Origin: Klebsormidium nitens
Lineage: Eukaryota > Plantae > Klebsormidiophyceae
Length of the DNA stretch: 64,000 bases
NCBI GenBank assembly: GCA_000708835.1
Contig: DF237188.1
Coordinates: forward strand, 1 to 64,000
Direction: 5' to 3'
In this document: one piece after another, positions 4,107 to 25,200 of the stretch
How the letters are laid out: each line of letters begins with the position of its first letter
Position numbering within the stretch: position 1 is the stretch's first letter
Position numbers and translations under genes: made by a program
Notes under the pieces: model-generated
The model's input: the letters and a program-made list of their open reading frames with translations, nothing else
What the model was told of the DNA's origin: nothing
Database searches by the model: none

Positions 4107-4916
4107 GTGTCCCCCAGCTATTTCTCAGATCTGCAGTTCGCCTGATGCGCTTCCTCCCTGATGAAGTGTGTTTGCGTCCATGAATAGTATACAATGCTGC
4201 GCCGAAAGTCCAGCAGCTGTTCCAGCATGAAGACGAGCAATGTTGCGATCTAGAGGTAGCAGAGCTACTATGACTAGTACAAATGAACTCTTTCTGCGAG
4301 TACTGCAGGCCCTGGCCCTGGCCCTGGCACCATGCAGTACTTGGCCTTCATCGGCTCACATGGCTTTGCTCCGTATCACTGCCATCCGTACGATGAGATC
4401 ATCATTCTTCAAACGACGGCATCGATGGGTCACACAAGTCGCGCGCGTGACAAACCGTTAGCTAGCAGTTCAACGTGTCGCTAGCAGTTCAACGTCGTGT
4501 CACGAAAAGCAGAGCTGCAGAGCTGCAGAGCTGTAGTGGTGCGTCTGGAGCGCGGCCGGGCGGCCGCGCGTCCATCGCGCAAGAAGTGGCGTTCTTCAGA
4601 AGAGCCTGAAAGCCAACTTGCTATTGCGTGATACTCACAGCTATTCGATTCGCCTCAATTGTGAAATGTTTCTTTTCTGTCAGCAGCTTATAATCTTGTG
4701 TTGAATGTGTGGGTTTTATCCACACGGGATCCAAAGCTCATTACATAGGACTGGTCTGAAAGGGAGGCGAGGTCGGACACTGCAGTAGTAGTCGCGTGCC
4801 TCTCGCCCTGCTGTCCGCAGGGTGTCCGCCGGCCTGCCACCCTGCTGAATGGAGCATGCCGACATCGTCTCCTGAAACGTTCTTACTCCTGGTGAGCATG
4901 GGAGAGGCGCGAAGGT

Positions 4917-5443
4917 NNNNNNNNNNNNNNNNNNNNNNNNNNNNNNNNNNNNNNNNNNNNNNNNNNNNNNNNNNNNNNNNNNNNNNNNNNNNNNNNNNNN
5001 NNNNNNNNNNNNNNNNNNNNNNNNNNNNNNNNNNNNNNNNNNNNNNNNNNNNNNNNNNNNNNNNNNNNNNNNNNNNNNNNNNNNNNNNNNNNNNNNNNNN
5101 NNNNNNNNNNNNNNNNNNNNNNNNNNNNNNNNNNNNNNNNNNNNNNNNNNNNNNNNNNNNNNNNNNNNNNNNNNNNNNNNNNNNNNNNNNNNNNNNNNNN
5201 NNNNNNNNNNNNNNNNNNNNNNNNNNNNNNNNNNNNNNNNNNNNNNNNNNNNNNNNNNNNNNNNNNNNNNNNNNNNNNNNNNNNNNNNNNNNNNNNNNNN
5301 NNNNNNNNNNNNNNNNNNNNNNNNNNNNNNNNNNNNNNNNNNNNNNNNNNNNNNNNNNNNNNNNNNNNNNNNNNNNNNNNNNNNNNNNNNNNNNNNNNNN
5401 NNNNNNNNNNNNNNNNNNNNNNNNNNNNNNNNNNNNNNNNNNN
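4917..5443. other. Assembly gap (527 N)
   Basis: Run of N; ORFs spanning it are artefacts. Confidence 0.99.
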
Positions 5444-7670
5444 CCTGCTCCTCGTAGGCATGCTTCTGACGCTCGTCGCCCCGCTTGCCTGATTTCCGTT
5501 GCTCTGCGGCAGTAAAGTGCGCGATGGTGCGCCACCAAACTTCTGCGCGTCGTGGTAACGTTTGCGCGCCACCAATTTTCTTGCACGACAGGACTCTGCT
5601 TTGAAGTGAGGACGCTTTCGAGTTCCAATATCTTGCGCATTCGCTCGCACGCTCCTCATTTGAACGCTCTTTCCTTTCCATCTTCTCCTCGTTTTTTATT
5701 TGGGGGCCTATCCTTCCCGTCCAAAACTAAGCTTGTCAAATCTGCAGCAGAAGCCGCTCGCCGAGGAGAGCAGAGGTGGCACCGTCAGAGCCAAATTCAG
5801 TTGGAGAGGTTATGGTTCGAAAGCAGGCGATGGTCATCCTTCGATTCCACGTAAGCTGGCAGTCGGGCGTTCAGCTTTCAAGACCGGCCGCTAAGTCTCT
5901 TTAGTTGGAGCTCGCTTACAGAATCTGATGGGAATCTATCTCTTCTTCTCTACAGCATATAAGGCCGCTGACTTGTTTGTAAGTCCCGCAGCATCTAGGC
6001 TGCCCGCTCTGTTCCGACACCCAGAAAGCTTACTCAAACCGGAAACCGTGACCGCTGAGCGGCAGGACTTTCTCGACAGGATCCGACTGCGAGGACGTTC
6101 TGATGCCTTTCCCTTTGACGAGATGTAGAACGCTTTACGTGCAAAATCAGCCTCAGTAATCTCAAACCCCAGATACGGAACTCAGTCGCTTCTTCGAATC
6201 AGGCAGCTTGATGCAACAATGACTTTGTGCCTGCTGCGAACAGAAGAATACGTTTTTCTTCATTATTCAGCCAGTTCCGCTTCACTCGCAGACAGTCTTC
6301 TTTTTGAGTAAACGGATTGACAGCTGGCAGTCTTTCCAATCTGGCGGACAGCTGACCGTCCCCCGTTCTCCCACCCTCCCTCGTTCCTTCGCTCTGTCCT
6401 GCCCGCTTCAATGACTCCTGTTCTCAGCGGGCGCCTTACTTTGCTCGCTATTCGACAAGGGCCCAGTCGATTCCATCACCCTTGTCACTCCCCCGCCCCG
6501 CGACTAGGAAGCCAATCAAGATCGCCAATCAAAATTGCCTACTTTGTGAGTTTCATCTTGGTTTGCTATTATTCCTGTGTTCCTGCTGCGCGCGCGCCTC
6601 GACGACTTCCACAGCAATCTGAAGGTCGTTCCACTCGTCGAAACGGCCCTCGCCGATCGCGGAAGGCCTTTTCCGTGTTCATCTGGCAAGTTTGTAGATG
6701 CTGCTGATATGACCGCATGCAGCAACCACATAAGAAATCGTTCGTTAGCGTATAGAGGGGTTGAACCTCTAAGTATCGACGTCTTGTATTAAAGCAGAAC
6801 TTGCCCTTTCTTCAGGGCATGCGGTTGATTTGGTTCTTGAGGGAGAGAATCAACATCCCGGATTTCGCGCCTCTGCACAAATGGAAGAAGCTACCCAGTT
6901 CGCCTACACTACCAATCAGTGACGGACTTTGCACGCGATCAGGTACGTTGAAGACTCCAGGTAGACGTTGTCAATCGTAGTTTGAAGCACAGAAGAGGAA
7001 GGTTTGCTTCTAAAGAGCAAAACCTTAACCCCTCTACCTGAAATGTTTCGCAGCCTCAGGGAGATGGGTTGGCGCAAAGCTCGGGAACCTCCATTCTCCA
7101 AGTTCAGGCAAGCTTTTCTTCCGAAAATTTCCTTCCTCGTTGATGAGATTCTTCCTTTTGTGGGGGCAACTGACCCTCTGGCAAGACACCTGGGGGTTCC
7201 GTTGGGCACTAGCTCTACTTTCGCTTCTCGAGCTTTTATTCAACTCATGTATACGTGCCCCATTTCGGGCGCTGTTACCCCTGCAACAATCTGGAATCTA
7301 TTTTCCTCAATCTAGTCATGTCAACCGAAGAGGTTGCAATTCGTGCGAAATAGCCACCACGGCCTTGATCGGAACGCCGTCAGCTGATCTTCTTATGTGG
7401 CATTAAAGCCCCTGGCTGACGCTTCCATGGCTATTCAATGGAAGTCCGGTGCACTCGCTTGATTGCCACGTGTCTCTCGCCGGTGCGCAGACGGCCCACG
7501 TCGCATAGGTAGCTTGCGGCTTAATACGTTGGTTTGAATGCAGCGAAGTAGGTAGGTATATGCAAGTTGGTGCATACGGAGGACAGTCGCTCGAATGAGA
7601 AATTGACGGTAAGTCTTTACTTCAGAGATAAGTGCATCCTACTGGACAGCAGGGGTCGAGAAAAACATCT

Positions 7671-7927
7671 TGGAGCTGGCGGGGCTCGAACCCGCATCTC
7701 TCATGCTCGGGAGTCCTCGGGAGTCCTCCTTGGAAACCTCCTAAGGCTCCTGAGCATTGCGCGGGCTAGGCCCGGCAGGCTGCGCGGAGCTTGCACGTCA
7801 AGCTCCGTGCCGCCCAGGGATCACCCCCCTTAGGAGGGAAAGCGGCCCCTCGAGGTCATTGTGCACGTGACCTCAGGCCGGTTCATTGAACCGGCGACTG
7901 GCGCTTTACCGATTAAGCTACAGCCCC
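7671..7927 (-). ncRNA. tRNA-Ala-like RNA with a 206-nt structured insert replacing the anticodon arm
   Basis: Minus strand reads GGGGCTG TA GCTT AATCGGTA AAGC G [206 nt] GCGGG TTCGAGC CCCGC CAGCTCC A. It has a 7-bp acceptor with G3-U70 and A73, a 4-bp D stem and a 5-bp T stem. U8, A14, A15/U48, G18G19 and T54T55C56-A58 are present. TTTTT follows 5 nt downstream (7665-7661). Confidence 0.8.
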
Positions 7928-7959
7928 ATCGTAAGGTGACTCGTCATGTGTGGTTTCTG

Positions 7960-8243: not shown

Positions 8244-8818
8244 CAGTAAATTCCAGATTCCAAAGGGACACTCCTACACAAGAACAAGCTTATCAGATCG
8301 AAGAAGCAAGTGCGACTCCTTCTGAGCTTGTTCAATCCGCCAAATGCTCGTATTACTGCTATGCAAGATCAAGTCGAGACATGGGCAATGTGGCATGGGC
8401 ACGCATGACTCGCATCAACTCAGAAGATAGTACTGGTCAGATGCTCTCAACCAGAAAGAGTACCGTTTCTTATGCCCTTTGACTCGGACGTCAGGAATGT
8501 TGGGTCCTTAAGAAATTGCTTCCCAGCAAGTCAGACGCACGTGTGGGCTCTACCAACATGACCGCCGCGAGACGCTCGATCAGGTTGCAGCAAGCCCGGA
8601 TCCGCTTGTCCGCGCACTTTGACAGGAAGCTCCGGCGAATAGTTGAATCTGAAAGCAAGAGAACAGCGTCTCGATCTGCTTCTAGTTCCGCTGTCTCATA
8701 TTCAAAGCGCCGGCATCACTTCCCTGCTTCGGACAGTTTGCTCCAGCGCGAAGCGGACGGCGATGCGCTGCAACGCGCGTCCGGTTTCGCGTCGTTGTGC
8801 CAGAACCGTCCGATGAAA

Positions 8819-8903
8819 GCCACGTGGCAGTCTTGAGCGGTAGGATCTTTCCGCTCGTTCTGGGCCGGCCCACAGAAAATGAAGGCAAGCAGGGCGTATA
8901 TAA
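8819..8903 (+). promoter_or_regulatory. Promoter of unit A: G-box, USE-like motif, TATA
   Basis: CACGTG at 8821, GCCCACAGA at 8868 and TATATAA at 8897; the conserved element starts at 8929. Confidence 0.7.
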
Positions 8904-8928
8904 GGTGGCGTTCCTGCCCTCGTCTTCC

Positions 8929-9190
8929 AGCGGATCGATCCGGGGCGCCCCCCGGCCCAGGGGCAGGACCTCTGTCCAGGGGTGCTCCACGGAGCTCCCC
9001 CGGAACCACCCATTACATAACCTCCCCCAAACAAATCTTTAAACCAACACAGACCTCCCAAACTCTCTTACAATCAATACAACAAACACACATCTCTCAA
9101 ATCTATCATGCTGCAACACCCAACGTCACACACTCACTTGACATTCATACGACTGACTGTGCTCATACTTCTTGAAGAGCCGCATGTTTT
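8929..9190 (+). ncRNA. Putative novel small RNA gene, unit A (77-nt conserved 5' domain plus G-poor tail); 3' end uncertain
   Basis: Core 8929-9005 is identical to unit C. The tail 9006-9150 has 5 G in 145 nt. The first T4 run is at 9187-9190. Confidence 0.65.
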
Positions 9191-9525
9191 CATTCAATTC
9201 GGCTGAACAAACACGTCTCATGAAGCGTCATTAGGAGATGAATATCCATACACTGCTTAAGCAGTGCTGCTGCATGCATCTGCTTCGTTCGAGAAGTGCC
9301 AGAATATTGTGCCTGCTCTCGCGATTTGGAACGTCGGACAACCGTTTCCAGCACCTGAATGACTTGCTGTTAAAAGCGCTTGACCTTTGAGGCTCGTGAA
9401 ATCTGTCAGGCGTGCTATTGAAGTGAAGAGCATGCTTGTATCCCATTCATTTCTGAACAAAACTGCTCTGTGGTTACTAGGCATAGGACTCGGTTGTGTC
9501 AAAATCAAAAGCAGGTCCCTCTGGC

Positions 9526-9745
9526 AAAACGTCGTCGGCAAGGAGAAGTGATGCTGGTTGGCGCTTGGTTTGGTTGGGTTTGTTCAGTATGACGAGTCAT
9601 GGATGGTTTGTTGGTCTGACATTGGTGCGAAAGAAGGAGGGAGTGGTGTTGATGGTGGTTATGGTTTGTTCCGGGGGAGCTCCGTGGAGCACCCCTGGAC
9701 AGAGGTCCTGCCCCTGGGCCGGGGGGCGCCCCGGATCGATCCACT
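9526..9745 (-). ncRNA. Putative novel small RNA gene, unit B; 3' end uncertain
   Basis: Core 9745-9669 has 1 mismatch to A/C. The tail 9668-9541 has 9 G in 128 nt on the RNA strand. Three T4 runs lie at 9529-9526, 9510-9507 and 9504-9501. Confidence 0.65.
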
Positions 9746-9771
9746 GGGAAAACCAAAGGGCAGGCGCTGAA

Positions 9772-9858
9772 TTATGTATGCACTGCTCGTTTGAAGGTCT
9801 TGTGGGCAAAGTGAAGAGATCGATAGAACGCCTTCGAGCGGTCCGATTGTGCCACGGG
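9772..9858 (-). promoter_or_regulatory. Promoter of unit B
   Basis: TACATAA from 9778 and GCCCACAAG from 9807. CCCGTGGCACAATCGGA near 9858 shares GTGGCACAATCGGA with the unit C promoter. Confidence 0.65.
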
Positions 9859-11721
9859 GTACCTACGGGACCGCTGTCGTCACGAAGTCGCCGAAACCGG
9901 GCGCGCACGAGACCGACGCCCGCTTAAGATAGCCCGCCCAAGTTGCGAGGAAGCAGGAAGGAAGGGAGCTGAAAGAGAAGTGATTAATCGTGTATACATC
10001 TGCGGCCTTTCTGCCACATTCCTTCTGCCAGCGCACGTCCGTCTCCGGCCTTGGGAGCACCACAGCCGTGATCTGATAATTCTGTAGAGTGTTAACAGAT
10101 TAGCACATGGATAAACTTAAACCCGTCTTCTTGACAAAGGGTCGGGCGCTGATCATCCAATCTTTTCTGTTGTCAAGGTAAAGGCAAACGAAGAGATATT
10201 CTCCGCAGCTTTCGAACCCCGATCCAAAATGACGGGGATGATAACGTGCAAGGGTGACCTTGACAGGAGTAGATGTCTTCCAAGCTCTCGTGGCAGCAGC
10301 CCGGCCAGCCCCGCGGCAGCGCTCCTGTGGTCGGCCGCCCTGAGCCATGGTCGCGAGGAAACTTCTCATGATCTGAGTCTGCCTCCAAAGAAAAGATGCC
10401 CAAGGACAAAGTTTTGGCTCATCATGGTTGCGAGTACGTGAACCTTGTGAGGAGTGATTTTGGTAGAGGATGTCGGGTGTCACATGCTTTCACTTTTATA
10501 GCTTGCATCTGAATGATCGAAACGGGCCCTGAAATTACGCTTAGGCCGCGGCCGCTAGTGGCCACAGTTTTGGCAGTTGCATCTTTTGAAGCTATGTTTT
10601 TAATGTTCAAGCATGGAGAGTCTGCGTTTCTCAGTCTTTGATACATGCATATCAACGTGTAAGAGGATTTAATCACGGTTCGTATGGCACGTTGAAAACC
10701 AGCCCGCACTTCAATCGCTCATATGATGTGTCTTCACAGGCGCTTCATCTTACACGGGATGCATGTCCCTTGAAAGCATGGCAGTGGATACGATCGACGG
10801 ATCTCAGGACGTTCAAACGCCTTTTAAACCATGCGCAGTATGATTAAGTTGGGCAGCTTATGCCGCGGCCTATAATTAAACGTTGACCGTCTTTGAGCAT
10901 GCTCACGTTCTCCTACTTCGCTTGATCCAAGATCGAGCTTCATGAACCTGTTTCATTCTCCAACTTGATCGAAAGGTGTTTCTGCTGGCAGGTCTCAGGT
11001 GATCATCTCACAAATGGGCATTGAGCTCATTGACTACGTTTTTTCGGCCATACTCCCCATGTCCTTCTTATGCAAGTCTTCCCTGTGTCGAACTAGGACA
11101 GAATTTGATGTACAAAACGCATGCAAGAAACTTTCTCCTTCCGTCATATCCTGGATATTTCTATCAACAACCTTGCTGTCTGCTTATAGCGAAAGCACTG
11201 TCATATTACCTATTACCGCGCCTGAAGTGCGCGGACCTTGAGTGTCTTCTCAAGGTCACCAATGAGGTCTTCGCTGGCGTGCTGCGTGTTCGGAAGCAAG
11301 AGCGATGAGCGTCCGCGAGGACCATGGGCGGGTATTCAGGATATCAAGCATCGTGCAAGCCCAAATCGTATACTGCGCATCTTTCGGAAGAAGCCTTTGA
11401 AGGGACAGGAAGGCTCATTGCCTTGAATTTTTTTGAACGCTCCTGCAAAAGACTCGATGCTAATAAAAAGGCTTTGTTTTCTTCTTTGGAGGCAGTTCCT
11501 TCCGGATTAGCCTACAGTTGAGCCAACGGGATTCGTGTACTTCTCCTGAGCTTGGAGAGGAGTCTCGTTTTCGGATAAGGAAGCAGGACACGCTGGCCAA
11601 CATGGCTTGTCATTCCAAAATCCTCGACCCTTCTCAAGGTTTTGGATCAGCCGTTCCCTTACATCGACTCTGGTCAAGATAAGGTTTGTTTCGACAGCCA
11701 ATTTAGAGGTTTGACGGATGC

Positions 11722-11756
11722 GTTCCGTTCCGTTCCGTTCCGTTCCGTTCAGTTCC
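11722..11756. repeat. (GTTCC)n / (GGAAC)n microsatellite
   Basis: Five perfect and two further copies, about 10 nt inside a minus-strand GTACGG donor at 11766. Confidence 0.9.
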
Positions 11757-11766
11757 ACTGCCGTAC

Positions 11767-11982
11767 CTCTAGGATTCCGGTCTGCACGACAGCGCTGCGG
11801 GAGGAGTCGTGGCCGGCTTGGGCGCCAGACCCCACAAGCGCGGGCGCGAACACGTCACGGTCGATGATGCGCGCGTGGAAGTCAGGGTCGCCGCGCAACA
11901 GGTACGCGCGCAGACGTACAGCGTTGCGCAGCTGGCGAGGCGTGAAACGCCCGCGAGTGTGGTGTCGCGCAAAACAACGACC
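11767..11982 (-). CDS. Probable internal exon of an unidentified minus-strand gene
   Basis: CCTTTCCAG acceptor at 11983 and GAG|GTACGG donor. The frame ...QLRNAVRLRAYLLRGDPDFHARIIDRDVFAPALVG... is open and GC3-rich. The remaining exons are unresolved. Confidence 0.4.
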
Positions 11983-14900
11983 CTGGAAAGGAAACCAACC
12001 GGTCACACTCCGTTCATCGTTTCGTGCTTGGAAGCAACCCTGACAAACGCAACGGATGGCAAGCAAGCGGGCGGGGGCGCGTCACTTTCGGCGACCAGTT
12101 GCTACAAGGAACCACATGAAACCAGACTTGCAGACACAGTCTTTTCAAGCCATTGACGACGCAAGCCAGTAAGCCAGTCAGCCGGACATTCAAGTGATCG
12201 TTTCCGCGGGCCGATCCGAAATTGTCAGACGCCTCGAGTCTTTCAAATCGTTCTGCATTAGGCCAGAGTGACCGACAAAAAAATAAGCCAAAGGCGTACC
12301 TGACGGTGGCGCCGATCTGCTGAATTACAAACGCCAGGACGGCGCGTGCCTCATGATTGTCCACCTGCGAGGGATCCCGGCCTTTGGCGCTGACGTCAGC
12401 AACGATGGGCTGCACGCAATTATCTTTGTTGGAGGGAGTGCTTGTCGGGGCCCTAGAATTCGGCGGCAGGCTCAACACACTGGCCCCACTTTTTGAAAAC
12501 CGCTCTGACGCACCAGCAAACCATTGTTCGACCTTGAAAAGCTGGTCAAAAGACGGCAATTCTGAGCTAGGATGCCTTTAGATGACAGACCCATATATCC
12601 GCAAACGGCTGACCGAATGCCCCTAGGGTTCTTTGCGCCGTCCCTTACCTGGCAAGCGCCATTTACCGGGCATCGACCTCAGCAACTGAAGGCAGCGCTT
12701 GTCGAGCATTATCAAGATGTCCACGACACGACACGGGCTGGCAAAGTGGTCATGCAGTGGACAGTTTCAGATTGCACGTAAAAATGGGTGGGCTGCCGGG
12801 GCACCTGAAGGACTGTTAGACGGGCCCCCCGTCCCTAGTGGTACTTGCTAGCGCTATCGAACTGGCGGCAACAGCGCGAAGCAGGCCGCCCACGAGCAGA
12901 GCGCAATGCACGATGTCTCGCTGGAAAAAGGGAGAGAACAAGCATCAACGCAAGAGCTTCTCGAACGGAGATGACGAAAAGACGGCCCTCCTGAAACGGC
13001 CGGTGCATGTTTCTCAGGAACTGCTTCCTCGTCCATTTTTCCAAGAGAGCGTCAGCAGCTGCGAAATTGACACCAATCTAGGGATCCACGGTCAGTCCAG
13101 CATCTGATTGGCAGTAACCATGAAGCTCCGGATTGCTGGAGGACCAAGGGCGAATGGTATGAGAGTTCTGTGCATTGTTAAGCAGATGCCGCTTTCCTTC
13201 TTCTGGGCCTCTATCTCTTGGCAGTTGGGAGAAAGCTGGGAACTCCAGAGTCGATTTAGACCAGCCCCTGGCAGATCGTTGACCCGGCATATTTCAAAGT
13301 CCCCACAAGACATCAACTTCTGTGCGTGCTTTTCCGTCTGTCGTGCACCAGCCTTGAGATGATGCGGGTTTCTCTGATACAAGCTATGGTTGGATTTGCC
13401 TTGTCCACGAACAATAACCGCCAGTGTGTCAATAAGATCTTTGCGTCGCATGCAATCCAGAACATCGTTCTGCACACACCTTCTTCTCCGTCTTTTTCTC
13501 AGCCCGCCAGTGCGCTGTGCCAACCGGTCCGCAAGCAACGCCTTTCCTCCAGCGTGTCCAGCTGTTGCCGCGTTGTGGCCTGCTCTTGCCCCAGCTCAAA
13601 CCCGCCTTTGCTGACTGGCTTGCCATGCGCCCGTTGGCTCATTAAAGGTCTACAGGCCCCCTCTTTCTTTTACCTCCGGTGGTTTGGACACACAGTTTGG
13701 ACGCTTTGACCCGCATGCCTGCTGGTGGAGGTTAAGATCGCGCACTCGAAGGACCTTCTGGAAGTCGGACTCCCGAAGATTTTGGAGGGGGGGGTGGCTG
13801 CGCATATTTGTGAAAGGAGGAGTCGGGCGGAGGGGCTTCGTCCACATGGCCGTTGTCTAGAAGGCACGGACATCCTGCAATAACAGAAGCCTTTGTGCGT
13901 CTACAGAAGACTTCGGAATGATTCTGGACTCCTGGATGTCACTCATCTTTGCACAGTTTCTGGTAGCTTGCACCTGGCCGTGGGGAGAATTAGCTGGCTG
14001 ATCATAAGCTGGCGCCCGTAACTTCAGAGAGTCATTCTGCTTGACGAATTCTGGAAAGTCGACCTGATTACATTTCCAACTTTAATCAAAGCTTTTCGAA
14101 AGTTGCAGGCTAAAGCTTTAACAATCAAAGCTGTCACAGTCTCCGTGAGAGGAGATTATGGCCCTGAATGAATCAGAAGCGAATTGGCCTGCTAAAATAT
14201 TTCCCATCGACTGACATGGAGCGCTTCAGTTGCAGCTTGGCAAAGGCCCCATGCATTACGGTTTTCAAGTTAAGGAGATCACAGATACCAGATGGAAGCT
14301 AAGCAGTATCCTCTGTAGATTTGCAATATCTGCCAGCCAACCTGCATACGCAGCCTAACAAATCGAAAGGGCTCACGACATGTCCCACTGCCAGCGCTAC
14401 AGATCCCTCAAGCAAAATGATAAATGGAGTTGTGCACCCTCACCCCCTAAGGTGCTGCTTTTCAGCGGCATGCGCATCCTCGCTTCTGGGCAAGAGGGGA
14501 TTTCTGCTGTCCGCCAATGCAGTGCCACCAGCCCCCTGGCCTGTATAGATTTTGTAGAGTTCTTTACTAGTGATGCGATGCAGCTTCTGCAGCAAACTCG
14601 AACTGGTTCATGTCCAACTTGAAAGTTTGGAACGGCCAATTCGATCTGCAATACGCAAAGAATGGATAGAGGCGCAGCTCAGATTGCGTCGAGGTCAGCA
14701 AGCAGAGATTGTGGTCCACCCCCGTTTTCAAATTTTGGCATTGCTGAACTACAGGAGCAAGTTTCACATAGACTCCCAATCAGCAAACATCTGCTGCACA
14801 CATTGCCAGCACTTCTTTCCATGTCCTTAGAAGGGCTCTCAAGGGAAAAATCAACCAGTCGAGTCCAATCAGCTATAGCATTCTCGCAGTAACTGATCGC

Positions 14901-16129
14901 TTGAGTGACGCCACTGATCATCATCTCATAAACTCGAAAGTCCGTACGCACCGTTTTGCTGCATGACGAGAAGCTTCAGAATTTCTGGGGCTTCCCCGCT
15001 ACGGACAGAAGCTGTTCGTTTTGCAGATATCTGTCCGTAAGCTCAAGGGTTGCAATGCAGGTACTGAATGCTGACCAATAGCACACGTCCCTCACCTTTG
15101 TGGGACCCTGTGCTAAGGGAGCCACTAAGCCTCCGGCGGCGATTCTGGTCTTGCCCCCACTGCCCTTCACAAACATCATCACGCCAATGTATGTGCGGTA
15201 CTAGCAATCATGGGAAGAGCGGAATGGACATTTGCTGTCCTCTAACAGATCGCCTTTCAATGGGAATCTTTGAGCGCGCGGTGGGAATCATAGGCCACTG
15301 GCTGAGACGAAGACACCATATCCTAGATCCTATTGATATCAATGTCATAGATCGAGGCGGCTGCTGATAAGTCATAAATCTAAAAACTGAGCAAAAAAGC
15401 AGAACCTGATCAGCCAATCCAAAGATCCAAATGCAACAAGGCAAATGTGTGCCGCAACTCCAGCTTCAAATTTGGAACGTCAGTCGTAGGATTGATTCAC
15501 CACCCCGGGGCCTTCGAACCGTTCGATTAGGCTCCTAGGCCCAATCGACGCCCCAGATGTCTCAGAAAATAGCGCGCGCGTTTTCCAACTACCTAAAATG
15601 CTTATGAAAGCCGAGGTGATTCTGAATCGTGATGACATACCTAATACCAGCACAAGTCCCACAGTATGCACTGCACAGTACCTAGTACTAAGAAGAACCA
15701 ACATCTGTGTACTAGCCTCTCATGACGCTGGGCTGCATTTTCTGTTTCATACATGTATTACTAGTTAAACTAATAGATGTACGCCTTCACTGTCAGCCCC
15801 TGATAGTTGAGCAGGAAGCTACATTCGAGCACTGTGCTGGCCAATCTGCATGGCCGGACTTCACTTTCTTCAGCGTACCTTCACGCCTGGGTTGAAATCA
15901 GAGCGGCATTGCGTGTCTTGTAGGTTCTTCAAACGCTGCTTGCCGCCATTTTGCCGCTGGAGCCACCATTTTGCACCGAGCATTGCGCCGCTAGTTTGCA
16001 CTCTGGAAACGTAATCAGCAGACGGGTTGATACTGCGCGCAATTGTCCATGCATGCATAGCAATCAGTGCCAGGAGTGCTCCTTCCAAATTCTATCCCAG
16101 CGCGCCGTTCTGCCAGGCGTTAAAGGACG

Positions 16130-19100
16130 ATGGACAAGCTAAACATCATCAGGCAGTATGCGTCTGACCGCCTCGACTCGCAAGCACCCCCGCAGTTCAG
16201 CCTCGTGGAGCTTGAAGCAGCAATCCTTTGGGGGGGAGGCAAGGTGGTCAAGGGGGTAGACAAGCAGCTGTTGAAGAAAGCATTCGTGGAGATAAGCGAG
16301 GATGAGCAGGAACTGCCACGCCGCAGGGCACGGGCGCGTGCAATGCTACTTGTCATTGATGCAGACACCGCCAACAAGTTGCAGGTGAAAACACAATGCC
16401 AGCTGGCAATGCCCATCCGCAATCTGCACTTGTCCTCGTGTGGAGTTCAGGATTCAGATCTGGTTGTATGTGAGCATCATTTGCTCTTAGGATTAGCAGG
16501 TTCTCTAAGGATATGCAGAAATCACACAGATACGCAAGAGACGAAGGCATGCATGAAGCTCATGTGCATCATCTCTCAAGCTTGCTTGCCCATCGTTGAA
16601 TTGCAGAGACGCAGGGACAGGTATCAGCAAGCGCCGCCGCAGCAGATTATGCAAGCTGAAACGGCAGCCATCTTCTCCAATGATGGCCAAGCTACTGAAG
16701 AACAAGGAAGCGAGCGGAGCTGGCCGCAAATGCAGGACAATGGGCGCAGGTAGAAGACACTCCACTCGGCATGGATGATGTGTTACTGAGTGATCTCCTC
16801 AGAAGAAATTTACCACACCGGCGGTTGAAAAAAGCATGAAAAGTGGGCTTGACCTCGTTGTTCTCTTGCAGTTTGCATGTTGATTGGATACCATGGCCTA
16901 TTAGTGCAGTGGTCAGCAAACCCTGATGGCGAAATGCGACAGCTGGGAGTTTTTCTGAAGCATCTAGAATCCTGTGGTTTATTAGCAGGACTCCATAAAA
17001 CACAAGAATCTCAAAAACACTCTGGTTAATCCGTGTCCTTACAGGATGGCCCCCCGTGCAACGTATGACACCCATGAACGCGACGTGGCAACCGGAGAAA
17101 TTGCTAACCTGAGAGAGCCCAGGTGAGATTCTCTGCCGCAGGACCCGGGAATGACTTCATGATACAGTCTGGGTTGCTGGCTGGAAGCAATTGAGCTTGT
17201 TAGTTTCAAAGTGCAGCTATTGCATGTAGACTCAAAAGCATGTCATATCCTGAATGATGGCAGGCTATTGTTGGCTCTGTTCATCCCGCAACATAATGAG
17301 GAAGGTCTTGAAGCCCCTATAATCTTGGTGGCATTTCAATTGTTCCTTGCTTTAGTGACAGGCCACTGTGCTCTATCGTGATGAGAGCAGAGTTTTTGCT
17401 TGTGGTGAACTTGCATTAAGAAAGTAGGTCAACTCTTTCAAAGTTCTGGTTACTCATGCAACCAGTTACGCAAATCTGCGACAGGCCAGATGGCGTTCAT
17501 GAATCAAAAGTGCCTGTAGCAGCAGAGGCATCCTTGCCTTCAAAGGTGCCCTTCACTTTGTCAGAATGGTGAGTGCAGCTCCTTCGGTCGGATCCTGGGT
17601 TGCCCCATATCCGTTTTAGCGACGGCCAAAGTTGACGCTTCGCTCACAGAGTTTCAATTAACGCGGTTGCAAGTTTCTGAGCGAGATCGAGTTTAACCAA
17701 CTTCGTCTCTTCCTTTGCAGGAACGTGGAGACACTGTGGCTGCCCCCGTTGACTTACCACGGCGCCCCCCGGCCAAAAATGTTCCAGAACGACCCGCAGT
17801 TCCCCCCCTACCCCCAAGTGTTCCGCCCCGTCCCCGTCAATCAGGAGTACTTTGGACCCAACGGAGCGCGGCTTGGCGACCACAATAAGGGGAACACAAA
17901 GCCTCTCTGGAGAGACCCCCGGAAGAGACCCTTTAAAGAGGTCGGAGAGGGCGAGAACGAGGAGTGCGGCTGGTTTGAGCAGCCGGTCAAGAGCCAGCGC
18001 AACGAGGGCGTGGAGAACAGCGGAGGAGTGCGGGCCAAGAGGCGCTTGGAGCTGGGGAGCGGCACGTTTGAGGCGAGCGCGAAGAGAGGGAGCGACGGCG
18101 TCTATGAGGACATGCCACCATTGGAGCCGGTCCTGGATGTGCCGGCTGGCAGGACGGAGTACGAAGAGACGTTCCAGGTGAATTTCGCCCTCTTCTGCTT
18201 GCAATTTAAGATTTTCATGACCGAAACTTTTGGTTGAGCACTTATGGAACATGCGGCTGACAAGTGGGTAGCGTGGTACTCGAAGGCTTTACGTTGCTTT
18301 CATTGAAAGCTCATTTTCTTCTACTGGCAGGAACATAGACGCGTTCCGAGCGTCACGAGTGCGGCTGTGAATCTAAACAGATACTGACTGCGGAAGCAAC
18401 ACTGGTAGTCCTGCATATGAGTAACTTGAAGCGACATTCCGTTTGCCTAACGTTGAGCTTCGAAAGTCGTCGCTTCATGCTTGAGCACAAAAAATGAGAC
18501 TTCTTATTTCGATCGTATGTCCATGGGTCTCTTCACTTGCTTTTTTATAGAACCTTTCCTGCAGGCAGCGTGCACAGGTGCCAATCGCGTCAACATTATC
18601 GACAACGGAGTCTGATGGCAGAATCTCAACGTCCACGTTGTGAGAAGCTATTGACCTCATTCAGTTCATTTCTGCAAAGTAAAGAACAGACTGGGATTTC
18701 CTGATCAATACCTGATGGCATCTTGAAGCATCTCGTTTTCCCCCTTGCAGGTGGTCGGGGATGACCCCCGGGCGGATGCCAAGCACGTGTACCGCTTTTA
18801 TGAGTCCAGAGCCGCGGCCGCCTTGCCGCGGCGCGTCGCGTCCAGCGGCCCTTACCGCAGCCGCGAGGAGCTGTATCGCGCGGAGCGGCGCCCCGGGAAT
18901 CCGCCAGTGCGCGAGCACGACGAGCGCGATGGCAGCACGGTGGTGAGGAACGAAGCCGCACTCAAATCTATCAAGGGTTTCTCAGGATCGGTTGAAGCTG
19001 AAAATAATGCTTTGCCCCGGGCGTGGTCATCATCGTCCTTGCGAAGTGATTGTTGCAGCTCACGGACGAATGCCTTGCGCGAAGCGTTGGATCGTAAGGA

Positions 19101-19440
19101 GTCCTCAATTGTTGCCTGTAACATAATCGAAGCATAGCACTCCCTACATGGTCGGACTATGCGGGTCCACGGTCTGCGCTTTGTTCGCGACCCCATCCTG
19201 AAGTTGCACCTTCGGCAGGTATCTGGCGGGAAGAGCTGGGTGAAGAACGAGGCCGTGCACCAGACCGTGTACGACCCCCGGGACGTCCGGGCCTTCCCAG
19301 GGAGCGAAGTGTTCAGCCAGCGTTACGGCAGCCCCGCGGGTATGTACCGGGAGGAGCGGCGCCCCGACTTGGCGCAGGGCCTGCCCGAGGATGAGCGGAG
19401 GAGGGCGAGCTGGGCACGCTGGAGGGGTGCGCGGAAGTGA
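16130..19440 (+). CDS. Unknown-function gene, paralog 3 of the family; intact, about 422 aa, Pro/Arg-rich C-terminal part
   Basis: Exons 16130-16384, 16607-16749, 17721-18177, 18751-18942 and 19219-19440 join in consistent phase (1269 nt) with GT-AG ends. Exon 1 (255 nt) is homologous to paralogs 1 and 2. There is an internal repeat YRSREELYRAERRP / YGSPAGMYREERRP. Confidence 0.75.
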
Positions 19441-21080
19441 GTAAAAACCATCTGTGCACTTTTCTAGTCACAATTAGTGAAAGTTTTCATCTCGAAGATC
19501 GGGTTTCATCTGGAAGGTCGGGAAAGACGAGAATGGAGACAGCTTGCAGGAAAGCAGTGCGACTCTAAACGTTCCGTTTTTTGCTGCCCAATCGTAATCT
19601 TTAAAGATGCAAGCTAGCGTACCCTGTTATAAGACGCTCAGAAACGTTGATCCCTTCAAGGCGGAGTATCTCCCTTCGCTTCGCCTTAGGCGTCTCTCTT
19701 CAATATTCTGGCCGCCTCTGCAAAATTAGACATCCCCGAAGCTGTCATATTAGCTTGAGAATAAGACCTCAACGCGAAACTTTCAGTGTTTTTCTCTGCT
19801 TCTTCCACTCAGGCGAGATGATCGCCGGAAAGTGAGCCTGAGGTCTAATTGTGACTTTGATCAGTTGGAGCTTTTCAAGTGAAGTGACCCCACATTGCGC
19901 GGTGTGCAGTGGGATCATGACAAGAAGGACGCATTTCCGCCGCACGCCGGACAGGACAAGACTCATGGGCGCGTTTAGGGAGACTCCGCTCGGGGCCTAT
20001 GACAGAGGAAACCAAGAGGACCACGGGGCAAGAGGTGCTTGTTTAAGGGAGAAGAGACAATAAGAGAATTGTGAGACTAGGATAGTGGGGCCCTGCTTGT
20101 ACATGGAAGTTGTAAAATAAGTGACGTGCCTGACTTGAGCGAGCCGATAGCTCAAGTGTAGTAGTTCGGGGGTGGGACACTACATGCTTTCCGCTATTAC
20201 TGAACAGCTTTACGATTGCTCTGTTGTATACCTGTATTTTTGACGGTCGAATATATTCATCATAAGCGGGTTCGGATTGACCTGAAAACTGAGTTAAAGG
20301 GATCCAAGCGGGTTCTTGCAACCACAAGAAGTGCCTCTTACGATCAGGGAGGCTAATCGTGCTGCTCCGTGCTGATCTTTTCACGTCCCAGACACGTCAA
20401 GGCATCGCTCAAGAAATCGCTATAATGGAAAGCTCGATGGTTTGACAATCTCGATCATCGATCTAAATGGAGCGTTCGGAAGATAACATGACCGTCGTTG
20501 ATATTGCAGTGACGCGATCCTTCCATATCAAATGCTATGAGAGCATTGCTGCAGTGCTCTGAACCAGACAAGTCAAGCCGCGCTTTCAGAACGCCGCCAA
20601 TTGTTCCCTTGGCTTTGTTCCATGTGTGTGTCACCTGCCACAGAATACCGTACTTGCATTCAGCATCCGCGCACATGCGGCCTTTGGTCAGCGCTAAAGG
20701 ATCTCATCATGATGAATGCTTCTCATGAGATCGACCGCAGATTTGCAATTCGATCAAATGTGCCGCTATGGCTTTGATCCACTTCGTGAATCGGAGAAAC
20801 CGTCCAATCACTATGTATCTGTTCTCTATGACCTGCAGAAGTGCAAGCGGGTGAGCCTCCACGTGCCTCCAGATTCATCAATATAAGCCTGTGCTTTTCT
20901 AATAACAAGCGCTGAGCTGCTACCAGGATTTGGTATTTTCAGATCAAGTTTAGTAGGTATTCTACGAGTCCTTCTCGCTTGATCGCGCTTGCTCTGGAAA
21001 GAGTGTGGCGGCTGTCGGAGAAACTCTCGAGCCCGCACGGCGCCTCGTCTGGATCCTGCATCGAGGCCGTTCAATGCACA

Positions 21081-21165
21081 CCACGTGGCACAATCGGAGG
21101 GCCAAAATTGCCTCGACAAAGTGTCATTCGCCCACAGATGATCCGTATATGGGTTGCATACATAA
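21081..21165 (+). promoter_or_regulatory. Promoter of unit C
   Basis: CACGTG at 21082, GCCCACAGAT at 21130 and TACATAA at 21159; the core starts at 21191. Confidence 0.7.
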
Positions 21166-21190
21166 GTCAGCGTTCTGCCCGCCGTCATTC

Positions 21191-21410
21191 AGCGGATCGA
21201 TCCGGGGCGCCCCCCGGCCCAGGGGCAGGACCTCTGTCCAGGGGTGCTCCACGGAGCTCCCCCGGAAACATTCCCGTCCTCCACAAACACAATTCCCAAC
21301 CAAACCAGATGCCCCACCAAATGCAATCCATCAATTTTTCCATTCCCCATCATCTTGCAGACCATCTGCTAACCCAAACAACACGTTCGACCAAAACCGT
21401 CTGACCCTTC
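21191..21410 (+). ncRNA. Putative novel small RNA gene, unit C; 3' end uncertain
   Basis: Core 21191-21267 is identical to unit A. The tail 21268-21410 has 11 G in 143 nt. T5 at 21335-21339 is a possible earlier Pol III stop. Confidence 0.65.
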
Positions 21411-21779
21411 AGTGTCACCGGAGCAGATGTGTGACGCAAGACCTCGTCTTTTGCATCCGTATGTGCTGAAAGTCGGAAGCCGATGGTCATCGGACTGAAC
21501 TCTTGCTGATCGTTGGTGTGAAAACTGAGCAATATTGGACTCAATTTTCATGGATGCGGTGCTTACTTTCAGCACTCAGCTTGTCGGCATGGTTGAACAA
21601 AACCAAATGGCTGAACAGACTCATGAGTTTTGATCTCGTCAAACTTGACATGGTGGCCCTATGGTCGAAAGTAAGGTAACGGCCCGCTTTTGAACAAACT
21701 CATCAAGACTACGTGCTTCAGAACGACGAATGCTCTTCCAGAGCCACGGTGAACACGCTGAAGGAAGTCGAACAAGGAC

Positions 21780-22107
21780 TTTGAGTGGTGGTGCTGAGTT
21801 TGAAGGAAAAGGAATGGGGTCAAATTCAGATGAAGGAAGAGCAGTGGTTCTGGATGGTGGAGGAATAGTACCGGTGGTGTCTTGGGTTGAAGGGAAAGCG
21901 GTGGTTTGCAATCATGAAGGATAAGGGATGGTGTTATATTGGTCAGAGGGGGTGTTGGTTTGGGGCCGGGGGGAGAGGGATCGTGTGAAGTTTGGTGTAG
22001 AGGGACGGTGTGAGGGTTTTAGAGTGATGTTTCCGGGGGAGCTTCGTGGAGCACCCCTGGACAGAGGTCCTGCCCCTGGGCCGGGGGGCGCCCCGGATCG
22101 ATCCACT
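21780..22107 (-). ncRNA. Putative novel small RNA gene, unit D; 3' end uncertain
   Basis: Core 22107-22031 has 2 mismatches to A/C. The tail 22030-21781 has 16 G in 250 nt on the RNA strand. Confidence 0.65.
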
Positions 22108-22132
22108 GAAAAACGAGGACGATCTCGCACCC

Positions 22133-22215
22133 TTTTGTATGAAGGAGGAAACCGTGTTCCTTGTGGGCTAAGGGCACACCAAAAGCCGCATCGCAGCCGT
22201 CGATACTGCCACGTG
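22133..22215 (-). promoter_or_regulatory. Promoter of unit D
   Basis: TACAAAA from 22139, GCCCACAAG from 22168 and CACGTG at 22210-22215. Confidence 0.65.
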
Positions 22216-25200
22216 TCATCTCATCGACGGTTCCGTCGAAAGGAGTGCCAGACTCCGCGGAGTTAAGTCAAACGAGTCAGACCGAGAACGCTTGTCGGAA
22301 TTAAACGACGCTTCCAGGAACTTGACGCCTTGCCAAGCTCGAACGTCCTTCCTGTCTGATGCGTAGCACACGGTAAAAGCTTTCATTCAGCTCTTTGAAA
22401 AGCTTTAAAAACGGCTCAGATAAGTAAATAACGGCCCGGGGAAGAGGCTGTTCGGTCTTGCAGTTTGCAACGGCTTCAGCTTGCTCCGAGCGCCCCATCT
22501 GATGCCTTGACGGATCAGATACTTTCATAGATTAGCTTCCGGTGTCAGCCTAGCTTCGTATACTATCTCAACATTGCTAAAACGGGTCTGCATACATACG
22601 CAGACTCTGGCTCCGGCCATAACTGATCAGCTGATGACCAGCAAGAAGAGTCCTGTACTTGCAGACCGCATTCGTCGTGGCCAGCATCCTGCATTCCACG
22701 AAGACCATGACTCCGTGTCTTCCGGGCCGAGATCTGGTCTTGATCGTCTGCAAAAGTCTTGCAGAACGATTTATCTACACAGAATATTCTGCACTTGGTG
22801 TCATGACATCATGATTACGGTGTCCGCTTTATCGGATGAGCATCTAAATGGCGCGGTAGCGGCTCTCTCTGTGATGCGCAACGTCTTCGGAGCAGTACTG
22901 GTCCGGAAAGGAAAGCGTGTAAGTATGTTCACGGTCTAACATCCGGCGTACAAGTAAATCTGTCCTGATCCAATTCAATCCTCTAAGCAGTAGTAAGCGG
23001 GACCAAGAATCCCTCAAGGCAGCTACCTTTGGTTCCGAGAGCAAGAACAGCCTTCAATCCTCAGTGAGGTCCTGTCCATTGGGGAGGAGCGCTTCCTTCT
23101 CTATCAGCCTCCTGAAGGAGGCCCTTAATTGTCGGTGGTTTTATGGGAAGGCAGTGTGTGCACGTACATGTCCCCCAAATCAACGACAGAAACAAAGGTT
23201 CTTCGAACACTGGAAGGGTCCAAGCTTGGGATGCTCCCGCCACGATAGACCTGCTGACGTGCCACATGAATGCCCGTCTCGGTTCTCGCCCGTCACCTGT
23301 GCTGTCTTTAATCAAATTCTCTATGGCTGGTCAAGAGAATCGGGAGATGCTTATTCAAAGACTCTGTTCGCATCCTGGTCTAGTGTCTCGTTTGCGTGCT
23401 CGCGCTCAGACAGAATCATCAAGCTGCAGCCCATCGGGGACAAGTTTCGCTCCTTCATTGTTGGTCTCTTCGTTGTGGCAGGAGACCGTGACAAAGAGAG
23501 GCGTCCTTTGATGATGAAGGGTTAACCAACCTTCCGCCCTTTGAAGTCTTGACAGATTATAAGATGGTAGATACCGTCAGATCAGATCTACAGTGCACGA
23601 AGTAGACTTCTTCAGACCACTCCCGAATGATTTTTATCAAATCCCCCCCCCAGGAACTGTCAGTTCTACTGGGAAGCGTACCGTCATTGCTGTTCAACGG
23701 ACCCAACTTCAGAGCGAGCTTCACGTGAAGAGTCCGAGTTCTTGCTGGGACCGAAACGCTCCGGAGTCTAGGATCCTGCATTTGCCTGACGTCAATGAAC
23801 GCCCGACGCCGCTAGGACAATGTCAAAACGTACAAAGAAGGCAACGGTGCCCTTAAACCGGAACCAGCTTCGCGGTCGTAAGAGGCATGCTATGATAGTA
23901 TCATTGTAATGAACAAAGAGCGCGCGCTCAACCTTGGTCAGTCGCAATCCCATATTGGCAATCGTCGCCGCTGCAAAAATTGAAGTCAATTAGATGTAAC
24001 AAATCCTTTCTAGGTGCATGAGACGCACGAAGAGGTGTGAATTGCTCCTGACCAGGGGCCTGAACTCTCAGTCCCGGATACGACCTCAAGGTGACATGGT
24101 GCAGACGGATCAGCGTAACTTCAACTTGACTGTCACCAAATGTTGCTGCCAAGATGTTACCCAGTTGTTATGCGACTAAGGCCAGTCGTTCGTCGCTTTC
24201 TGCGTCGCTGCTTTTCTGCTCTGAGCATTTGATCAGGTCAATCGTTTGCTAGTCGTGACGAGAGCTTGCATACAGCGGTTTCCCTTCTTCCCTCGGAGGC
24301 CGGTCCTCGAACCTGTCCGAGTTCACGAAGTGGTTTCAAGCAGGGTATCGAGCTTCGACAAGGTGCACGAGCTGGCGGTGCACGAGGATTAAAGGGACCT
24401 ACCGAGTTGAGCTTATGGCCCAGTGGGTTCGACCGGCTACATATCCGATCCAAACGGGGACCGACTGTTTCCGCGCATTGAGTCAAACATAAGTACCGGG
24501 CACCGCGCAAATCGACAAATCGAGCTATTTATGAACCAGACAGGTTTGAAAAAAATCGCTGTAGAGTGGGTATTGAACGCCCAGGAAGACCAGGCATTCT
24601 CGGCTGGGCGGATACATTCAGAATTACTCGCACCGGCGCATACATACTGCCCCTGGTGGGGCCCTGGTTCTAACGCTGTGAGGTGTCTCGGCATCCTCGA
24701 TCAACAAGCTGAGACGTGCGCAACAGCCTGAGGTGGGCTACCACCATCCTGGAGGCATTACTGGCAATCAAAGTCCCTTTCATACCGGGTTTACCCAGAC
24801 TAGTAAACCAATCACGCTTCGATGATAAGATCGAGTAACATCGAAGCACTAGCTAGGTGGTCGATGGCTTCCGAGGGCGCGGTGTGAGCGGGTCGGGCCA
24901 GAGGGGCGAGCGTTAGCACGGCGCGTTTGACCAAGCCCTCTGCAGCTCTACAATGCCCTCTAAGTTCAGCTGTGACGCGAAGGGCGCTTGGCCGGCCGCG
25001 GCGCGGCAAGTTTCTGTGGCGTTTGAAGCACAAGTAACGGTTTGTTGCGCGCGCGATTTCTTCTTCTACCAGTCAAGCCGTCGATGAAAGCAGCAGAATC
25101 TCATCGTACGAACAATGATGCTCCGAAGCATCGTAAGGAAAACGCCCACTCTGCACGTTGCAATTTGCAGAGCCAAGCTCTCCGAGCTCCATCTTCTGCT

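Follow-up and report, generated by a model that had tools for sequence, protein, structure and literature searches.

A transcribed multi-copy unit with an invariant GC-rich head and G-poor tails in Klebsormidium nitens

Type-3 (USE + TATA) snRNA-type genes include those of U6, U3, MRP, 7SL and telomerase RNA; in green algae their USEs have been reported to be ACCCAYAW and ACCCATAA, and those type-3 promoters that contain a TATA are reported to be Pol III targets (PMC8287931). The dictyostelid Class I RNAs are lineage-specific, multi-copy non-coding RNAs of ~60 nt, with a DUSE at -60, an 11-nt motif and a terminal stem between their 5' and 3' ends; their function was long unknown (PMC7919456). 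Spliced-leader RNA genes are multi-copy, with an invariant 5' part, a variable 3' part and their own snRNA-type promoters. In the Pol III-type regulatory RNAs BC200/BC1, a structured 5' protein-binding domain is followed by a long unstructured low-complexity region; they are single-copy and retroposon-derived, with internal promoters and A-rich tails.

The units described here lie in a window of 64,000 nucleotides of Klebsormidium nitens DNA (contig DF237188.1). Like the type-3 genes, they have a box with a CCCA core near -60, a TATA near -30, multiple copies, an identical transcribed core and diverged flanks; in contrast, their RNA fits none of the Rfam 15 families of those genes, two further boxes lie distally (a G-box and CCGTC..ATG), the conserved part is not followed by a terminator, and the tails vary too much to be a telomerase RNA template. 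Compared with BC200/BC1, the promoter is external, the paralogues are many and the tails are C/A-rich. Compared with the spliced-leader RNAs, the boundary of the conserved part is GGAA followed by C or A, without a GU donor, there is no shared Sm-like site, and the conserved head was found joined to C/A-rich family tails alone, never to mRNAs. As in the Class I RNAs, an apparently lineage-specific multi-copy RNA has an upstream box ~60 nt from the start and a highly conserved 5' motif before a variable remainder (PMC7919456), but the conserved part here is 77-80 nt, a terminal stem is missing, and the variable part is a long single strand poor in G. Membership in that class was rejected, since length and structure differ and the general design alone is common; the likeness is one of analogy, not of homology.

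Repeat units in two convergent pairs

The GC-rich core of 77-80 nt occurs four times in the 64-kb window, arranged as two convergent pairs. A 74-nt pattern is present without mismatches at 8932-9005 (+), 9669-9742 (-) and 21194-21267 (+), and with one mismatch at 22031-22104 (-); the window holds no fifth site, the number of sites expected by chance is zero (100 shuffles), and an nhmmer profile of the head found no further or degenerate copies in it. The head coordinates are as follows.

8929..9005, + strand: copy 1 head, 77 nt; conservation extends to ~9008
9669..9745, - strand: copy 2 head, invariant; T at position 3
21191..21267, + strand: copy 3 head, invariant; RNA contig starts at 21200 and 21226
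22031..22107, - strand: copy 4 head, one G-to-A change; T at position 3

At most two positions vary among the four cores, and position 3 separates the left copies of the two pairs (C) from the right ones (T). The heads are 97-100% identical compared to ~30% for the flanks, and ungapped pairwise identity is 0.88-1.0 within the conserved block and 0.23-0.57 beyond it. The block extends from about -2 to +77..+81, with the C/T difference at position 3 counted in, and all the pairwise comparisons agree on its boundaries to within a few nucleotides. The four near-identical cores with non-aligning flanks reported in the original prediction are thus borne out by both the pattern counts and the pairwise identities.

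The mates of each pair retain a faint tail homology at matching offsets. An inverted duplication probably produced a convergent pair, which would then have been duplicated as a unit. Head identity could stem from concerted evolution via gene conversion instead of selection.

The arrangement also bears on a mobile or repeat element of MITE- or MULE-like type, whose terminal inverted repeats would be the heads and whose promoters would read inwards, or on a DNA-level regulatory cassette. Each pair is indeed an inverted repeat with heads 641-755 bp apart, the two pairs have unrelated interiors, in the manner of Pack-MULEs, and DNA palindromes (GGATCGATCC and GGAGCTCC) abound in the head. We consider this explanation very improbable: spaced boxes are conserved outside the heads, whereas the termini of a transposon are normally its best-kept part; identical heads beside spacers near saturation are not neutral decay; and head and tail are transcribed together. 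A Pfam search of the ORFs of at least 113 aa between 10 and 21 kb detected no transposase domain, the sole match being a weak, host-like GCS2 exon between the pairs. The traits of a TIR transposon or MITE were also missing, with interiors that do not align and with neither the heads nor the outer limits of conservation flanked by target-site duplications, so that the transposon terminus against which the original prediction had warned did not emerge.

Promoter boxes at fixed distances

Each copy is preceded by four boxes at fixed distances, despite diverged spacers. GCCCACA lies at -61/-62/-61/-61 (copies 1 to 4); the G-box CACGTGGCA at -108/-109/-108 in copies 1, 3 and 4 and, as the one-mismatch variant CCCGTGGCA, at -113 in copy 2; and a TATA-like box at -32 to -35, which reads TATATAAG or CATACATA in three copies and has the weakened form CATACAAA in copy 4. 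The offsets previously proposed for these three boxes were correct at all four copies. The fourth, a distal box CCGTC(N)GATG (CCGTC..ATG) at about -123 to -127, is an addition to them.

8806..8928, + strand: copy 1 promoter; distal box CCGTCCGATG 8806-8815, G-box 8821-8829, GCCCACA 8868-8874, TATATAAG 8897-8904
9746..9872, - strand: copy 2 promoter; CATACATA 9773-9780, GCCCACA 9801-9807, one-mismatch G-box 9850-9858, distal box 9863-9872
21067..21190, + strand: copy 3 promoter; distal box CCGTTCAATG 21067-21076, G-box 21082-21090, GCCCACA 21130-21136, CATACATA 21157-21164
22108..22230, - strand: copy 4 promoter; weakened TATA CATACAAA 22134-22141, GCCCACA 22162-22168, G-box 22207-22215, distal box CCGTCGATG 22222-22230

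Within the window, the arrangement of a G-box followed by GCCCACA is confined to the four units, and a promoter profile run over the 64 kb gave no additional sites. A conserved YCAG follows the TATA box, and its A, 32 nt past that box, is the most likely start of transcription. Type-3 genes have a USE-like box ~55-70 nt and a TATA ~30 nt upstream of the start; here GCCCACA at -61/-62 takes the place of the former in all four copies and the TATA-like box (weakened in copy 4) that of the latter, and GCCCACA has the CCCAYA core in common with ACCCAYAW and ACCCATAA (PMC8287931). A neighbouring Pol III-type tRNA-like gene, ~1 kb away and with a T5 terminator at its end, has an upstream CCCACAGA box with a TATA 28-30 nt downstream of the box; Rfam scans detected no snRNA genes within the window, and the promoter comparison is limited to this tRNA-like gene. 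The assignment to the plant snRNA-type promoters holds in part: the box resembles the green-algal USEs, and box and TATA occur also at the tRNA-like gene, but the USE-to-TATA gap of ~19-22 bp is unlike the 23-24 or 32-34 bp of Arabidopsis. The box offsets support a dedicated promoter of fixed geometry on a real multi-copy unit.

Folding of the head, composition of the tails and known families

The minimum-energy fold of the head consists of three consecutive hairpins (-38.4 kcal/mol), and this is the fold that the head most likely adopts, as judged from the energy model. The cloverleaf proposed earlier can be drawn with standard pairs throughout (-33.6 kcal/mol), but it is not supported as the structure of the head: it lies 4.8 kcal/mol above the best fold, covariation support is absent because the head copies are identical, and head stability is no better than that of shuffled sequence (z = -0.04). 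The G-to-A change of copy 4 disrupts the base pair that closes the loop of the third hairpin.

The tails are strongly depleted in G in all four copies (4-7% G across 120-260 nt), and their predicted folding energies (0 to -6.7 kcal/mol over 120-148 nt) leave them nearly unfolded. Leaving an N gap aside, stretches of 120 nt with at most 8 G occur window-wide only in the tails of copies 1, 3 and 4, the tail of copy 2 being marginally over this cut-off. The claim of an invariant head followed by variable tails is therefore borne out, with tails that are single-stranded by prediction.

9006..9155, + strand: copy 1 tail, 4% G; first 122 nt at a predicted 0 kcal/mol; first T4 run 9187-9190 (+259)
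9543..9668, - strand: copy 2 tail, 7% G; first T4 run 9526-9529 (+217)
21268..21399, + strand: copy 3 tail, 7% G; T5 run 21335-21339; T4 run 21449-21452 (+259)
21463..21575, + strand: possible structured 3' domain of copy 3; 11-bp stem 21463-21473/21565-21575 around two hairpins
21769..22030, - strand: copy 4 tail, 7% G; the longest, ~260 nt; T4 run 21807-21810 (+298)

A motif search of the tails gave a weak CCCAA(A/C)CAAA-type string as the only shared motif, and BLAST found no complementary targets of the full units within the window.

These compositions bear on whether the mature product might be the 77-80-nt head alone, as in an snRNA, with the G-poor tail acting as a 3' trailer or termination zone present in RNA-seq as precursor or read-through. 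Multi-copy snRNA genes have an identical coding part and diverged flanks, the pattern found here, where conservation is restricted to the head; moreover, RNAs of 80 nt are missed by ordinary RNA-seq, in which long precursors alone would be visible, and this could account for the low depth. Nevertheless, we regard a head-only product as decidedly unlikely, since it leaves unexplained the extreme G depletion over 120-260 nt in four trailers and in a fifth seen in RNA, and since neither a T run nor a shared box follows straight after the head in any of the four copies.

The original prediction that the units belong to no known RNA family stands. Rfam 15 (covering snRNAs, SRP, MRP/P, 7SK, telomerase, Y, vault, ribozymes, riboswitches and tRNA) gave no meaningful match at gathering or E-value level, for the whole window or for the unit alone, and ARAGORN called no tRNA. 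The best score was that of mir-331 (threshold 80), with 23.5 bits at 9657-9700, antisense to the copy 2 head, and 16.1 bits at the copy 1 head, likewise on the wrong strand, and Giardia U2 reached 11 bits on the wrong strand (threshold 100). Several other classes were rejected on inspection of the sequence: an HDV-like ribozyme (no downstream partner for the P1 helix), a tRNA-like cloverleaf (4-nt loops and no ARAGORN call), an H/ACA or C/D snoRNA (boxes absent), a telomerase template (telomere-like strings single, at chance level and different between copies) and a spliced leader (no donor site).

No relatives in other genomes were found by the metagenome and viral-collection scans. A 20-mer from the head had 11 metagenome matches, in GC-rich, bacterial-looking contigs, which were attributed to chance, 34-44 of 80 positions being identical beyond the seed; two viral-collection scans gave 0 matches. 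At the protein level, a word search with two frames of the head and exact-protein searches with three head or tail ORFs had no match, and a HMMER scan of 1.8 billion representatives returned just two tandem-repeat proteins with summed weak matches, judged to be chance.

Transcripts and the nature of the RNA

The family of RNA genes is real and transcribed: it is covered by RNA contigs, as the original prediction had called for, and these contigs place head and tail in one molecule. Contigs of three studies cover 21200-21941; they are unstranded and of low depth (2-5). The stretch 21942-22400, including 21942-22027 of the copy 4 tail, is uncovered, so the coverage is not a uniform DNA carry-over. 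Contig sequence also covers the copy 3 promoter region itself (20953-21187), which counts against the explanation favoured below. Around the copy 3 head, one contig stops 2-4 nt before it and another attaches 31 foreign bases to it at 21226.

Two attributes of the family have to be revised. One contig carries the head (21200-21267) on a different C/A-rich tail that is absent from the window, switching exactly at the head/tail boundary; the family thus has more than four members, instead of the four initially counted. The label of small RNA does not hold either, as the observed transcripts, of at least about 350 nt (unbroken contigs of 348 and 663 nt, beginning inside or just after the head), are not clearly small, and the sole T5 run of a tail (copy 3, 21335-21339) is read through. 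The clues to the polymerase are the presence of a TATA, which in green algae predicts Pol III, first runs of at least four T at +145 to +298, and the T5 run crossed by RNA contigs. This read-through and the lack of a T run right after the head are a poor fit to a simple Pol III small RNA.

These transcripts might instead be Pol II mRNA-like or long non-coding RNAs of ~380-500 nt, with the head as a cap-proximal 5'-UTR control element, the G-poor stretch as an AUG-free unstructured leader like TMV omega, and short fast-evolving peptides perhaps translated from the first AUG. The G-box is a typical element of regulated Pol II promoters, contigs of 348-663 nt cross the T5 run, the leaders are unfolded by prediction, the first AUGs (at +118 to +192, with frames of 12-33 aa) fall close to where the G-poor stretch ends, and in two studies the contigs end at 21572/21573 and resume at 21608/9, as expected of convergent 3' ends. 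However, the first-AUG peptides are unrelated and every frame is closed in at least one of the four copies, indicating no conserved downstream ORF; the translations resemble none of the 1.8 billion proteins; a structure of -38 kcal/mol at the cap would block scanning; no UGUAA or AAUAAA was seen by eye near the putative ends; and the USE-like box and TATA match those of the neighbouring Pol III-type gene. On balance, we find Pol II genes of this kind unlikely.

The explanation that we favour, with about even confidence, is a family of non-coding RNAs specific to the lineage, with an external promoter of snRNA type, an invariant 5' head, a low-G single-stranded tail and an ordinary 3' part. The promoter would consist of the distal G-box, the USE-like GCCCACA at -61 and the TATA at -32. 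The GC-rich 5' domain of 77-80 nt, kept base-for-base, would assemble a fixed protein or RNA partner and protect the 5' end, and the low-G stretch of 120-260 nt, unable to fold, with few AUG or GU and drifting freely in sequence, could serve as a platform on which C/A-binding proteins dock or G/U-rich targets base-pair, followed by a 3' part of ordinary composition. A role of the tail as guide, template or decoy is purely conjectural. In its boldest form, which we hold to be rather doubtful, the family would represent a class of modular eukaryotic RNAs new to science, in which a universal 5' handle loads one protein complex and a G-free, structure-free 3' arm gives each paralogue its own specificity, either by addressing G/U-rich nucleic acids as guide or decoy or by tethering C/A-binding proteins; the genes, paired convergently, would be driven by an snRNA-type promoter that the G-box regulates.

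The non-coding RNA of green algae is poorly charted, and the traits of this family (fixed spacing of the promoter boxes, a 77-nt handle that does not vary and a single-stranded arm of constrained composition) are clean enough for its members to be found genome-wide. If the head were merely the conserved 5' leader of unstable transcripts, it would still mark a dedicated promoter and leader module, having its core box in common with a Pol III-type gene 1 kb away. The promoter would be a candidate tool for small-RNA expression in Klebsormidium nitens, and the family would amount to a new RNA-protein particle should its head nucleate a specific protein complex.

Copies, promoter boxes and a neighbouring gene

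A pattern search of the 64 kb recovered the core as originally described, with four occurrences in the window and 0 expected by chance.

8932-9005, + strand: core match of copy 1, 0 mismatches
9669-9742, - strand: core match of copy 2, 0 mismatches
21194-21267, + strand: core match of copy 3, 0 mismatches
22031-22104, - strand: core match of copy 4, 1 mismatch

The unit starts (8929, 9745, 21191 and 22107) correspond to the core plus three preceding bases, the third being C or T. The copies form two convergent pairs (1/2 and 3/4; heads separated by 641 and 755 bp), and a profile search across the 64 kb revealed no extra or degenerate copies. When the copies were compared without gaps and aligned at their starts, mean pairwise identity was 0.88-1.0 from +1 to +80 and 0.23-0.57 in every 10-nt window outside the head. 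This pattern mirrors that of multi-copy snRNA genes, in which the transcribed core stays identical and the flanks decay. The two left-hand copies have C at position 3 and the two right-hand ones T, a split by side which suggests an inverted duplication followed by duplication as a pair. Between the pairs, a host-gene exon at 18745-19137 (+) weakly matches glutamate-cysteine ligase (GCS2). The region of this exon is overlapped by a GC-rich direct repeat with 76-nt units (18820-18895 and 19291-19366, 72% identity, 471 bp apart).

The promoter offsets of the original prediction were all correct when re-measured in the four copies: they have the USE-like box GCCCACA at -61/-62/-61/-61 and a TATA-like box beginning at -32 to -35, whose sequence is TATATAAG or CATACATA except in copy 4, where it has weakened to CATACAAA; the G-box CACGTGGCA lies at -108/-109/-108 in copies 1, 3 and 4, with a version carrying one mismatch at -113 in copy 2. 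Beyond these, CCGTC(N)GATG forms a fourth conserved box, located about -123 to -127, and there is a 15-nt string common to copies 1 and 2 at about -145. The arrangement of G-box plus GCCCACA is confined in the window to these units, and shuffles gave none. A gene with a comparable promoter was found one kilobase upstream of copy 1.

About 7930 to 7661, - strand, promoter to about 8000: tRNA-Ala-like gene with a long insert

Neither ARAGORN nor Rfam made a call at 7661-7930. Upstream of this gene there is CCCACAGA, followed 30 nt further down by a TATA-like box, and the mature 5' end lies about 42 nt beyond that; directly past the 3' end there is a T5 run. The gene looks Pol III-transcribed, and the matching box and TATA indicate a module common to the family and this Pol III-looking gene. 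According to Fajkus et al. (PMC8287931), green-algal USEs have the ACCCAYAW and ACCCATAA forms, green-algal type-3 promoters with a TATA are Pol III targets, and Arabidopsis tells the polymerases apart by a spacing of 23-24 vs 32-34 bp. In the family, GCCCACA and the TATA-like box are spaced by 28 nt. The USE-to-TATA gap is about 19-22 bp, indicating that the Arabidopsis rule is not transferable. There were no snRNA genes of the same genome within the window.

Head, tail and rejected or less likely identities

The head was proposed to be structured, which is plausible but unproven from folding predictions. The proposed cloverleaf (7-bp closing stem plus three hairpins) is legal, with standard pairs throughout and a predicted energy of -33.6 kcal/mol; the minimum-energy fold reaches -38.4 kcal/mol with three consecutive hairpins (12-17 with 22-27; 30-35 with 41-46; a long interrupted hairpin across 47-76). 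Stability was not greater than that of dinucleotide shuffles (z = -0.04), as expected of any sequence at about 70% GC, and covariation is absent because the copies are identical; the single substitution of copy 4 disrupts the pair that closes the loop of the last hairpin, whichever fold is assumed. The head contains two perfect DNA/RNA palindromes, GGATCGATCC (+4..+13) and GGAGCTCC (+63..+70).

Past the boundary ...GGAA, G drops to 4-7% for about 125-150 nt (copies 1-3) or about 260 nt (copy 4). Leaving aside an N gap, stretches of 120 nt with 8 or fewer G are confined in the window to three of the tails (copies 1, 3 and 4); that of copy 2 (7% G) is narrowly above this cut-off. Base counts point to a run of N at about 4902-5477, an assembly gap that produces the artefactual long 'ORFs' at 4716-5681. 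Tail pieces of 120-148 nt gave folding energies of 0, -3.7, -6.7 and -2.5 kcal/mol, so these RNAs are predicted to be unable to fold, in agreement with the single-stranded tail first proposed. The tails are mutually unalignable, with faint homology between pair mates at corresponding offsets. All four contain a string of the CCCAA(A/C)CAAA type, more commonly than block shuffles do; five of the seven window occurrences of TGAACAAA lie between paired heads (9204, 9454, 9579(-), 21594, 21691), and CTGAACAAAC is common to copies 1 and 2.

No Rfam family reached threshold (the best sub-threshold matches were junk on the wrong strand). No tRNA identity was found, C/D and H/ACA snoRNA boxes are absent, and the lack of both a GU donor at the boundary and a shared Sm site rules out a spliced-leader RNA. 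A mobile or DNA-level element is very improbable: there are no target-site duplications and no transposase nearby, and the conserved spaced boxes continue beyond the heads, unlike transposon termini. A 20-mer of the head gave only chance matches in a metagenome collection (GC-rich, bacterial-looking contigs), and a viral collection gave no matches. No frame is both open and conserved across all copies, and head translations have no real protein relatives. A Pol II RNA resembling an mRNA, in which the 5' leader is conserved and tiny peptides drift, is considered unlikely. Elsewhere in the window, host-gene exons were found at 36848-37393 (+; IBR/RBR E3 ligase) and 58811-59839 (+; glycoside hydrolase family 1-like by eye), and a 741-codon open frame at 29173-31398 (+) encodes a low-complexity Gly/Ala/Glu/Lys-rich product with no Pfam match.

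Transcription of the family

Both pairs are partly represented in RNA-labelled runs from the same organism. Four runs from three studies were mapped on 20900-22400 (assembled contigs, strandless, at a low depth of 2-5), and RNA contigs span head and tail.

21226-21573: RNA contig
21609-21803: RNA contig
21279-21941: RNA contig
21329-21572: RNA contig
21608-21814: RNA contig

None of the four runs had contigs over 21942-22400, so uniform DNA carry-over does not account for the coverage. In a 241-nt contig, positions 21200-21267 of the head lead into 173 nt of another C/A-rich tail, with the switch exactly at the head/tail boundary; 30 examined letters of this tail were not found in the window. 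Head and tail therefore belong to the same RNA, and one or more additional members are expressed, enlarging the family of four originally proposed. A small RNA made up of the head alone, with the tail as trailer, appears slightly less probable than the mRNA-like reading.

In two studies the contigs end at 21572/3 and resume at 21608/9. The break fits two convergent RNAs (about 380 and 500 nt, ends 35 nt apart), in which case the copy 3 end would match the 3' strand of an 11-bp stem closing a two-hairpin domain. It is no more than suggestive, being equally compatible with one long transcript of copy 3 in which coverage dips, or with shorter Pol III RNAs that are read through. Such shorter RNAs could end at the T4 runs found between +217 and +298, a distance of 15-50 nt past the G-poor stretch in copies 1-3; the T5 run in tail 3 is traversed by RNA contigs. 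The copy 3 promoter region (20902-21187) is also covered, and one contig (20953-21187) stops 2-4 nt short of the head. An assembly break caused by the repeat would fall elsewhere, and the contig may reflect a processing site or a transcript that is antisense or lies upstream. A contig from run X25 joins 31 bases absent from the window to the head, with the junction at 21226 beside a putative CAG acceptor (CAG|GACC at 21228/9), and is then colinear to 21573. This junction could be a cryptic acceptor, a copy of half the head at another locus or a chimeric assembly via the shared 45 nt.

Proposed nature of the family

We give about even chances to a family of lineage-specific non-coding RNA genes with an snRNA-type promoter. 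Pol III and Pol II are both candidate polymerases: the promoter resembles that of the neighbouring Pol III-type gene, while the transcripts seem to exceed the usual length of Pol III products. The closest counterparts in design are dictyostelid Class I RNAs (PMC7919456) and BC200/BC1-type RNAs, the family being a member of neither. The simplest explanation of the invariant head would be a platform on which a fixed partner assembles. In the tail, composition is constrained and sequence is not, pointing to a role that requires a long, accessible single strand poor in AUG and GU, which may serve as a protein-binding platform or a pairing arm.
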